Source: Octopus bimaculoides (Eukaryota). Taken from it: a DNA stretch of 64,000 bases. The position numbers and the translations under genes were made by a program. The stretch covers positions 1,247,830 through 1,311,829 of the forward strand of contig NC_068995.1 in NCBI RefSeq assembly GCF_001194135.2. Reading direction: 5' to 3'. Positions 51,001 through 52,822 of the stretch are shown here, piece after piece. Within the stretch, counting starts at the first letter, position 1; every line of letters begins with the position of its first letter. The notes below the pieces were generated by a model. The model was not told the origin of the DNA. It made no database searches and saw only the letters and a program-made list of their open reading frames with translations.

Positions 51001-52822
51001 GCAGCTAAGACTAGTCTGAGTCATAGTATGGTCTGTGACAAATTGCAGAAACAGGTCGACTCTGAGAAAGACATCAATTTGGTCACTGATAAACTACAGC
51101 AAGAGGTTGACTCTGGTCAGATAAATAGTTTGGACTGTGATAAACTACAACAGGAGGTTGAGACTGGTCAAGAAAGTAGTTTGGTTGTTGAGAAAGTACA
51201 GCAGATAGTTGAAACTGGTCAGATAAATAGTCTGGCCAGTGGCAAGCTACAGAAAGAGATTGGCTCGGGTCAGAGAATTAATTTGGCCAGTGATAAACTA
51301 CAGAAAGAGGTCGACTCGGGTCAAGAAATCAGTTTGGTCACTGAGAAAATACAAAAAATTAAGAGTGGTCAGAGAAGGAGTCTGGCCAGTGATAAACAAG
51401 AGACAGAGGTTCAGACTGGTCAAGAAATCAATCAGGACAGTAACAAAGTAGAGACTAGGTCTGACTGTGGCCAGAGAAGCAGCAGCAATGTCACTGAACA
51501 ATTACAAAAAATATGTAATAGTGGTCAGTTGGACAGTGTGACCAGTGGTCAATCTCATGGGTCAGCTAATACTGGTCAAACAGATTGTTCAATTTTTCAC
51601 TCACATTCAATGAAACTTTTTCCCCATTCCACTGAAAATTCTATTGAAACTAGTGAATCTATGATTAAAGTGGACACTAGTTGTAACCATGGAGACAGTC
51701 CAAACAATGAGATTGCTCCTAGCTGTCCACCTCAGTTTCAGGGATCAACTGGTTGTGTCAGTGTAGACACACAGTTTCACTCACCAGCCGAGACAACCTC
51801 AAAACTTCCTCAAGACAAGGAGTTCCCTACCGAGAGGGACAACGGTCAGACAACAGAATTGGTACACCAATGTCCCATTTGTCACAAAGACATACTAATT
51901 CCTGACATGTCTACTTTCAATGAACATGTTGATCTGTGTTTAAACCAAGCAACAATCAGGAAGATTCTGGTAGAACAAGGAAAGGAACTGAAGAATTCTG
52001 CCCAGCTTAAAAGGTGGGTCGCTTTCTGTTTTTTGTTTTATTCAATCTAAACTCTGACCATGTCCCCTTTTGTCAGGGGAGGGAGGTGTGGAGAAGTAAC
52101 CTCCGACCTTTGCACACACAGCTTTCACACCTTTAATTAGAGAAGGTGGAAATAGGCAGTAAACGATGATCTCTACTCTCAGGTGAGATTGATTGATATG
52201 AATAATGCCCAGTCTGGATAGCATAGCAAGTTTATGGCTTTGCTGGCCTGTGGATCCATGTTGAACATCCACTGTCACATGTGGGACAGATCTGGCTATC
52301 AACTGAATCCATTTTTGCTGCTGCTTTCTAACTAGGAAGGGCAGGCAGTTTTTTTTTTATATGCCTGGGGTGGACATGATCAAAGGGAATGATGGCAAAC
52401 ACTTTCCTCTTTGATCAATCCCTCATCAACTTCAGCCATTTTGTTGAAAGGTGGATGAGAGTGGTGAGTGAATGGGTGTGCCCTGAGCATACACCTGTAA
52501 ATCACAGATAAAGAACTGTGAAAAGGAACCTGCCCCAGAAATCAGGGCACCCTTGGTTTTATGTTTTTTTTTTTTTTTACCATAAGTAGTAACCCTTGCA
52601 TGTCCACTCCCAATTGGGGAATTCTCAGTGTTGTCCACAAATCCCACTCACCAAAAGTTTTATCCTGTGCTGTCCTTAATGTCTTCTTTATGGTGAACAA
52701 AGAAATTCCTCTTCTTTAATTCCAGGCCTGCTGAAAACCCGAGTCCAGACATCAACAAAAGGAAGAAATCCCTAAAACACAATTCTACACCAAGAATTGA
52801 TTCTTATTTCTTTAGTGTTTAA
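41906..52822 (+). CDS. POLK: DNA polymerase kappa (Y-family, DinB orthologue), whole coding span, 11 exons, 1339 aa
   Basis: Exons: 41906-42029, 42888-43006, 43215-43367, 44004-44592, 45102-45226, 45792-45958, 47407-47439, 48268-48364, 48914-49085, 49670-52013, 52726-52822. Total 4020 nt, all GT-AG and in phase. N-clasp [68 protein letters not shown], two UBZ4 fingers, C-terminal PIP box. Confidence 0.97.
42888..43006 (+). CDS. POLK: POLK exon 2 (N-clasp)
   Basis: 119 nt, [40 protein letters not shown]; phase 1->0. Confidence 0.92.
43215..43367 (+). CDS. POLK: POLK exon 3 (motif I)
   Basis: 153 nt, [51 protein letters not shown]; donor GTGAGT. Confidence 0.95.
44004..44592 (+). CDS. POLK: POLK exon 4 (fingers/palm with Cys-rich insert)
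   Basis: 589 nt, [19 protein letters not shown]...[10 protein letters not shown]...[27 protein letters not shown]; donor GTGAGT. Confidence 0.95.
45102..45226 (+). CDS. POLK: POLK exon 5
   Basis: 125 nt, [25 protein letters not shown]...DLPIRK. Confidence 0.95.
45792..45958 (+). CDS. POLK: POLK exon 6 (thumb)
   Basis: 167 nt, [27 protein letters not shown]...[10 protein letters not shown]. Confidence 0.95.
47407..47439 (+). CDS. POLK: POLK exon 7 (33-nt micro-exon)
   Basis: [12 protein letters not shown] (human DGERKSMSVER); ttttctttag acceptor, GTAAGT donor, phase 2->2. Confidence 0.92.
48268..48364 (+). CDS. POLK: POLK exon 8 (little finger/PAD)
   Basis: 97 nt, [32 protein letters not shown]; donor GTAAGG. 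Confidence 0.93.
48914..49085 (+). CDS. POLK: POLK exon 9 (little finger/PAD)
   Basis: 172 nt, [22 protein letters not shown]...PKPFRLRLM; donor GTAAGA. Confidence 0.95.
49670..52013 (+). CDS. POLK: POLK exon 10 (2344 nt; PIP-like motif, UBZ1, long linker with 17-aa repeats, UBZ2)
   Basis: Continuous ORF starting GVRMSN; acceptor tttctag at 49668-49669; donor AG|GTGGGT at 52014; phase 1->2 fits the next exon. Confidence 0.92.
49885..49953 (+). other. POLK: POLK UBZ4 zinc finger 1
   Basis: [23 protein letters not shown]: CxxC...HxDxCL signature. Confidence 0.9.
51019..51528 (+). repeat. Coding minisatellite: ten 51-bp units encoding 17-aa repeats (consensus near [17 protein letters not shown])
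   Basis: GGTCA(G/A)-type unit ends at 51120, 51171, 51222, 51273, 51324, 51372, 51423, 51474, 51528 (spacings 51,51,51,51,48,51,51,54). Confidence 0.93.
51871..51942 (+). other. POLK: POLK UBZ4 zinc finger 2
   Basis: [24 protein letters not shown]: CxxC...HxDxCL signature. Confidence 0.9.
52726..52822 (+). CDS. POLK: POLK last coding exon (NLS and PIP box)
   Basis: 97 nt, [32 protein letters not shown] (human ends KKIKPNNPKHTLDIFFK); AATAAA about 35 nt after the stop. Confidence 0.9.

Follow-up and report, generated by a model that had tools for sequence, protein, structure and literature searches.

In vertebrates, the Y-family DNA polymerase kappa (Pol kappa; gene POLK) carries a C-terminal region in which a PCNA-interacting peptide box (PIP1), a Rev1-interacting motif (RIR), a ubiquitin-binding zinc finger (UBZ1), a linker, a second finger (UBZ2), a nuclear localization signal (NLS), and a second PCNA-binding box (PIP2) follow one another. 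The C-terminus of human Pol kappa past PIP1, a motif whose role is described in the same source, is invisible in cryo-EM and is taken to be dynamic (PMC11276120). Here we describe the POLK gene in a 64,000-nucleotide stretch of the Octopus bimaculoides genome (NC_068995.1, positions 1,247,830 to 1,311,829, forward strand; hereafter the window, in whose numbering coordinates are given) and an array of ten head-to-tail 17-residue units that it encodes between its two ubiquitin-binding fingers. We favor the explanation, with a probability of roughly 0.75, that this array is a tolerated, decaying in-frame coding minisatellite in the disordered tether joining UBZ1 to UBZ2, and not a special module.

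The order of modules in octopus POLK is like that of the vertebrate protein. Both octopus fingers find their best PDB matches in the UBZs of human Pol kappa (7nv0_A), UBZ1 in residues 622-652 and UBZ2 in residues 778-811 (E 1.1e-6), followed by the UBZs of RAD18 and WRNIP1, and the octopus protein ends in a candidate aromatic PIP box. The octopus protein differs from the vertebrate one as follows: its tether spans 640 rather than approximately 131 residues and includes the ten-unit array, and no FF-type RIR is found between PIP1 and UBZ1, where the human protein has one.

The array also resembles the coding minisatellites known from disordered regions, which are arranged head to tail, have a period divisible by three, and gain or lose whole units between species; like them, it occurs in a single lineage, lacks a fold, and is under weak constraint. 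It differs from them in being old, diverged (units within a species share 52-80% DNA identity), and unhomogenised, which points to a decaying rather than an actively variable array. A third comparison is with tandem arrays in the C-terminal regions of other POLKs, described below, which likewise lie in a disordered region of the same protein, but to which the octopus units are unrelated in sequence and in comparison with which they are longer and more diverged. No paper in the library searched combines the terms "polymerase kappa" and "octopus", so the array is apparently undescribed.

A tandem array within octopus POLK

The POLK protein encoded in the window is 100% identical to the O. bimaculoides protein of 1328 residues, whose UniRef name is DNA polymerase kappa. 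Precomputed domains assign the Pfam families IMS (PF00817) and IMS_C/little-finger (PF11799) to its catalytic core. It has 1267 homologues at E <= 1e-30 and, among the 120 listed, all that bear a functional name are DNA polymerase kappa. The host gene of the array is thus a DNA polymerase kappa, belonging to the DinB/Pol kappa branch of the Y-family. The two C2HC fingers are identified by their sequence matches as UBZ domains and are predicted to bind ubiquitin. The identity of the protein, the exon map (Table 1), and the UBZ matches together bear out the initial annotation, made from the DNA alone, which had placed the array in Pol kappa between ubiquitin-binding fingers. A single large exon encodes the array together with both fingers; the open frame that spans the array extends from 49678 to 52050, and the large exon is also open in L001, a genomic Logan contig (run SRR11869385; synonymous divergence dS of 0.29 to the window) from a more distant octopod.

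Translation of the forward strand agrees exactly with the ten units and the 51-bp period first noted: eight of the ten units measure 51 bp, and the shorter unit 7 (48 bp) and longer unit 10 (54 bp) leave the frame intact. Tandem Repeats Finder reports a repeat at 51023-51428 with a period of 51, 8.0 copies, 69% matches, and a score of 265. Bases 51 positions apart match at a frequency of 0.56 in the array, compared to 0.274 +/- 0.020 (maximum 0.340) in 2000 shuffled sequences and 0.28 further upstream in the array's own exon. The array is therefore a genuine tandem repeat, far beyond chance. The unit consensus comprises S3, L4, K8, L9, Q10, V13, S/T15, G16, and Q17, and a hidden Markov model (HMM) of the unit recognizes ten domains in O. 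bimaculoides POLK with scores of 18.7-29.5 bits; no further unit copies occur in the 64-kb window beyond the array. A possible vestigial 11th unit directly downstream, 17 residues with two xGQ endings, was rejected, as its DNA is 44-59% identical to the other units and the unit HMM does not detect it; the same segment is partly deleted in L001.

A later 153-bp triplet duplication had been proposed on the basis of likeness among units 4/7/10, 5/8, and 6/9, but such a higher-order structure did not reach significance. Mean identity of units three apart (0.678; permutation p 0.059) is close to that of units one (0.662) or five (0.664) apart, the proposed classes yield p 0.19, and units 4/7/10 alone yield p 0.30. 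The most similar pairs are 2-6 (80%), 3-8 (79%), and 5-6 (78%), which no single lag fits.

Distribution of the array and length of the tether

O. sinensis and O. vulgaris POLKs each contain ten units that correspond one-to-one with those of O. bimaculoides, while L001 contains nine, with units 2 and 3 fused in register, and has a further deletion directly after the array. Orthologous units differ between species at 0-7 of 17 residues. As paralogous units within a species are more diverged than these, there has been no homogenisation or concerted evolution of the array since the Octopus splits.

Outside of this group, the unit HMM detects two vestiges, DPLQKVIDTGQ and SDKIQKG, at the colinear place in the POLK of Argonauta hians (1523 residues), with full scores of 6.6-7.6, where the highest score among 300 shuffles was 5.3. 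In a second cephalopod-like POLK (P0005) and in POLKs from bivalves, a chiton, and macaque, the unit HMM finds either no match or a full score of at most 1.8. When 1.84 billion representative proteins were searched exhaustively with phmmer, the only matches were Octopus-type POLKs and four weak ones (E 6e-5 to 5e-4). The latter are probably prokaryotic or phage proteins; we do not consider them relatives of the array, as three contain ITSGQI-type repeats of another period and one an NEFNLTPE-type repeat, and their similarity was judged compositional. The array is accordingly specific to the Octopus lineage, as had been proposed, and older than the splits among the sampled Octopus species.

The Argonauta tether has repeats of its own, at about residues 700-1440 of the protein: two copies of TTTNIMSSEMEPEIRDRA, a stretch of serines, a block of ~35 residues that occurs twice, DTD-rich repeats, and HIEKSVETDxSV-type repeats with a unit of ~15 residues. 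The unit HMM recognizes none of these, and the SVETD and DTD types were rejected as homologues of the Octopus unit.

Since all of the protein records are computational gene models, the array could in principle be absent from the protein, either as an artefact of assembly or annotation or as a cryptic intron (exitron) removed from the mRNA. This is highly improbable. Independently assembled genomes of O. bimaculoides, O. sinensis, and O. vulgaris all contain the array, as does the Logan contig of another run, so it is not peculiar to one assembly, and none of the six isoform models from the three Octopus species lacks it. The frame is open over 779 and 747 codons in two species, every indel, including the loss of a whole unit, is a multiple of three, and the ratio of nonsynonymous to synonymous substitution rates (dN/dS) is significantly below 1 (see below). 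From the open frame, the frame-preserving indels, and the dN/dS ratio, we infer that the array is translated.

The history proposed under the minisatellite reading begins with one or two proto-units. Replication slippage or unequal exchange would have multiplied a 51-bp unit once the Octopus lineage had split from Argonauta, and before O. bimaculoides diverged from O. sinensis and O. vulgaris and from the more distant octopod represented by L001. Since then, point substitutions and the occasional loss of a whole unit would have eroded the array at the weakly constrained rate of the tether, leaving a translated array that adds ~170 flexible polar residues to the protein.

Arrays of this general kind are not unique to the octopus. 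A scan of 97 orthologues found significant C-terminal tandem arrays in at least eight POLKs besides that of O. bimaculoides, including O. sinensis, so that the earlier statement that no Y-family polymerase contains such an array does not hold. Arrays between the catalytic core and UBZ1 are present in the scallops Argopecten (eight copies of 10 residues) and Mizuhopecten (seven copies of 7), the freshwater mussel Sinanodonta (three copies of 9), and the frog Leptodactylus (12 copies of the 5-residue TSNVA), while those of the chiton Liolophura (three copies of 15 residues) and the eel Anguilla (four copies of 7) lie between both fingers; Argonauta has two copies of 18 residues. Judged from their sequences, the arrays of different lineages are mutually unrelated, which indicates that the disordered C-terminus of Pol kappa has gained arrays many times.

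The tether itself is unusually long in cephalopods, with 608-821 residues between the UBZs of four cephalopod-type POLKs compared to a median of 131 in 89 orthologues. Together with the copy number of ten in three species and the preservation of frame by every indel in the array, this length would fit an array whose unit number, irrespective of unit sequence, is selected to set the reach from UBZ1 to UBZ2 and PIP2. We regard such tuning of length as improbable. P0005 attains 608 residues without the array, which indicates that the tether was long before the array expanded, and Argonauta attains 821 by means of different sequence. L001 combines nine units with the deletion just after the array. 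Preservation of frame is needed in any coding insert and is thus unspecific. Moreover, a rough polymer-scaling estimate indicates that the array adds ~4 nm of root-mean-square reach to ~21 nm, already well past the size of the PCNA ring. The minisatellite reading assigns the array bulk length and flexibility between ubiquitin- and PCNA-binding modules as its likely contribution, with no unit-specific activity.

Constraint and predicted structure of the array

The initial annotation offered two functional readings: a multivalent module for partner binding or phosphorylation, and a length-variable spacer. In the former, the units would form amphipathic helices with an S/T-G-Q cap and bind through ten-copy avidity; candidate partners include ubiquitin, SUMO, PCNA, and an octopus-specific factor. 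The regular pattern of the unit from S3 to Q17 is compatible with this proposal, which predicts that the units are constrained beyond the surrounding tether.

We estimated dN/dS by the Nei-Gojobori method between the window and the DNA of L001; O. sinensis was compared as protein only. The array has a ratio of 0.40, compared to 0.50 for the remaining tether and 0.12 for the UBZ1 region. The array is below 1 (p 0.0013) and so is not diverging at the neutral rate that the initial annotation had considered for a tolerated minisatellite. Its constraint is nevertheless that of plain linker: nonsynonymous and synonymous counts do not differ between the array and the rest of the tether (Fisher p 0.76), while the UBZ1 region does differ from the tether (p 0.006). 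The conserved block following UBZ1 has ratios of 0.13-0.28 in sliding windows starting at 49858 and 49948 and 0.40 in the window starting at 50038. Introns of the window and L001 are 81-84% identical.

Comparisons within the array point the same way. Units 9 and 10 have dN/dS of about 1 or more, which speaks against a multivalent module, and among paralogous units the ratio is 0.50. Residues common to the units use identical codons (GGT, AAA, AGT, CTA), as shared descent alone would produce; selection on the amino acid is not needed to account for the likeness of the units. The S/T-G-Q cap, previously taken for a conserved feature, is among the positions that change between species. In three species pairs, consensus positions changed at 10/89, 17/79, and 16/79 sites and other unit positions at 12/80, 20/72, and 20/72, respectively, which is no significant difference, though the comparison has low power (Fisher p 0.34-0.50).

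Argonauta provides a more distant comparison, and here the array is not kept. Its identity to Argonauta is 0.28, within the range of plain tether (0.23-0.31), while the functional blocks are retained: UBZ1 at 0.93, the post-UBZ1 block at 0.74, the NLLKYF block at 0.71, and UBZ2 at 0.75. The tether thus holds conserved motifs, but these do not include the array.

Structure prediction likewise gives the array no confident fold. When the whole exon was modeled by AlphaFold2 (AF2) with four octopod sequences, the confidence score pLDDT was 25-40 over the array; within the large exon, only the UBZ fingers, at 77-85, were modeled with confidence. The array modeled alone reached a mean pLDDT of 40, and no array residue attained 70 or above; as the alignments were shallow (three or four sequences), these models are weak evidence on the fold of the array. 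No Pfam match in the array reaches the cut-off, and no PDB match falls below E 0.69. The array is polar and charged in composition, with a charged-residue fraction of 0.29 that is the same in the rest of the tether. On these predictions the array is disordered; transient short amphipathic helices within it are plausible.

Several known types of repeat were compared to the array and rejected. Ubiquitin-interacting motifs (UIM), motifs interacting with ubiquitin (MIU), and SUMO-interacting motifs (SIM) are short motifs of helical or hydrophobic character, frequently present in several copies, that occur beside ubiquitin-binding domains in DNA-damage-response proteins. Neither UIM nor any other Pfam family matches the array even at E up to 10, and the Leu-Ala pair of three units appears to have a spacing unlike that of MIU. 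A loose SIM pattern fits only two of the ten units, and there are no S/T-Q kinase sites in the array, which speaks against both SUMO binding and phosphorylation at such sites. A structured solenoid or helical repeat domain finds no counterpart either, with neither a confident repeated fold nor a match to a known repeat family in AF2, Pfam, or the PDB. Nearly every unit ends in glycine, and a glycine at each 17th residue, together with a period not divisible by seven, disfavors a coiled coil.

Some observations weigh against a merely tolerated array. Units 1-8 have dN/dS of 0.20-0.30, lower than any other part of the tether apart from the known blocks, although for units 2-8 (0.30) the difference from the tether is not significant (p 0.27). 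Ten copies have been held stable in three Octopus species. AF2 places low-confidence helices in units 1-4 and 7, and the mean helical hydrophobic moment is 0.33 in the array compared to 0.25 in the rest of the tether. Finally, with three or four informative species and ~65 substitutions, modest unit-specific constraint would escape detection. The low ratios, stable copy number, predicted helices, and higher hydrophobic moment are what a multivalent module would lead one to expect, yet constraint at the level of linker, consensus positions that change as often as others, lack of retention in Argonauta, and predicted disorder leave such a module unlikely; of the two functional readings offered initially, the spacer is favored and the dedicated module is not.

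A more specific version, for which we see only an outside chance, is an Octopus-specific avidity module in which the helices of units 1-8 attach to a partner at stalled replication forks; this partner could be a cephalopod-specific factor, or ubiquitin or SUMO chains carried by PCNA. Its signature would be the somewhat reduced dN/dS seen in units 1-8 and the unit number held at ten and, if it were correct, Pol kappa would be recruited in a mode not known from any other Y-family polymerase. Taken together, we consider the tolerated and decaying minisatellite the best explanation of the array.

Other features of the locus and implications

The coordinates of POLK, its C-terminal modules, and the array are collected in Table 1. 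Two blocks of the tether, at 49966-50127 and 50758-50820, are near-invariant in four octopods including Argonauta within a tether that otherwise evolves fast. The second block may be a PIP- or RIR-like motif with an aromatic pair, as its sequence suggests, and either block may represent a relocated RIR or an additional PIP-like motif.

Table 1. Position of POLK, its C-terminal modules, and the tandem array in the window
Feature	Position	Strand	Remarks
POLK gene LOC106874111, coding part	41906-52819	+	tblastn of O. bimaculoides POLK protein against the window
POLK exons 1-5	41906-42031, 42887-43006, 43212-43367, 43992-44633, 45068-45250	+	tblastn
POLK exons 6-10	45768-45959, 48266-48370, 48908-49087, 49663-52014, 52724-52819	+	tblastn
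Large POLK exon, 2.35 kb	49663-52014	+	Residues 514-1297: PIP1-like motif, UBZ1, tether with array, UBZ2; GT donor at 52015
PIP1-like motif KKDSIEYFL	49711-49737	+	Candidate by sequence; colinear with human QRSIIGFL, just past the catalytic core
UBZ1 zinc finger	49885-49950	+	Motif match, residues 588-609; AF2 beta-beta-alpha, pLDDT 77-80
Conserved block after UBZ1 (ADFEDF...)	49966-50127	+	Internal control for genuine constraint in the tether
Conserved block NLLKYF	50758-50820	+	Second internal control; NLLQYF in P0005
Array	51019-51528	+	Ten in-frame head-to-tail units; residues 966-1135 of O. bimaculoides POLK
Units 1-5	51019-51069, 51070-51120, 51121-51171, 51172-51222, 51223-51273	+	51 bp each
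Units 6-10	51274-51324, 51325-51372, 51373-51423, 51424-51474, 51475-51528	+	Unit 7, 48 bp; unit 10, 54 bp
Possible vestigial 11th unit (rejected)	51529-51579	+	17 residues, two xGQ endings
UBZ2 zinc finger	51871-51939	+	Motif match, residues 1250-1272; AF2 beta-beta-alpha, pLDDT 78-85
Last coding exon	52724-52819	+	NLS-like KRKKSLK and C-terminal candidate PIP box; compare human KHTLDIFFK

A micro-exon of ~33-36 nt at 47405-47440 (forward strand) is included in POLK isoform X1 (1339 residues) and skipped in X2 (1328 residues). The segment corresponds to a stretch of the core common to all POLKs, which reads RDGERKSMSVERTF in human. X2 is therefore missing conserved catalytic-core sequence and may represent either a splice form without function or an error of gene modelling.

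Approximately 100 bp past the POLK stop codon, presumably in the 3' untranslated region, is a compound TAC/ATT microsatellite of ~26 triplets (52921-53009). An Rfam search of 41000-54000 returned no match. Upstream of POLK, open reading frame (ORF) fragments on the reverse strand at 17613-21058 contain kelch-repeat and BACK-domain-like sequence (IYCIGGYDG...), which suggests a kelch-like (KLHL) gene. An ORF at 35690-36232, also on the reverse strand, contains GQWLHMFPEGNV, which we take to resemble a tafazzin-type acyltransferase motif. Assembly gaps (2154 N in total) are located at about 7700-8230, 18950-19250, 31030-31090, and 57830-58610 and are flanked by dinucleotide-type microsatellites that translate as IY, YI, or SL repeats.

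As a tolerated minisatellite, the array would be an ordinary case of modest comparative value: disordered tethers that join interaction modules can accommodate minisatellites expanding in frame. A unit-specific function, if it nonetheless proved true, would constitute a new recruitment feature of a translesion polymerase. The inter-UBZ tether of cephalopod Pol kappa is fivefold longer than that of the median orthologue. This length, together with the recurrence of unrelated arrays, indicates weak constraint on the exact length of the segment between the ubiquitin- and PCNA-binding modules of Pol kappa and on its exact sequence, and such natural variants in tether length could be used to test how tether length affects the recruitment of the polymerase.

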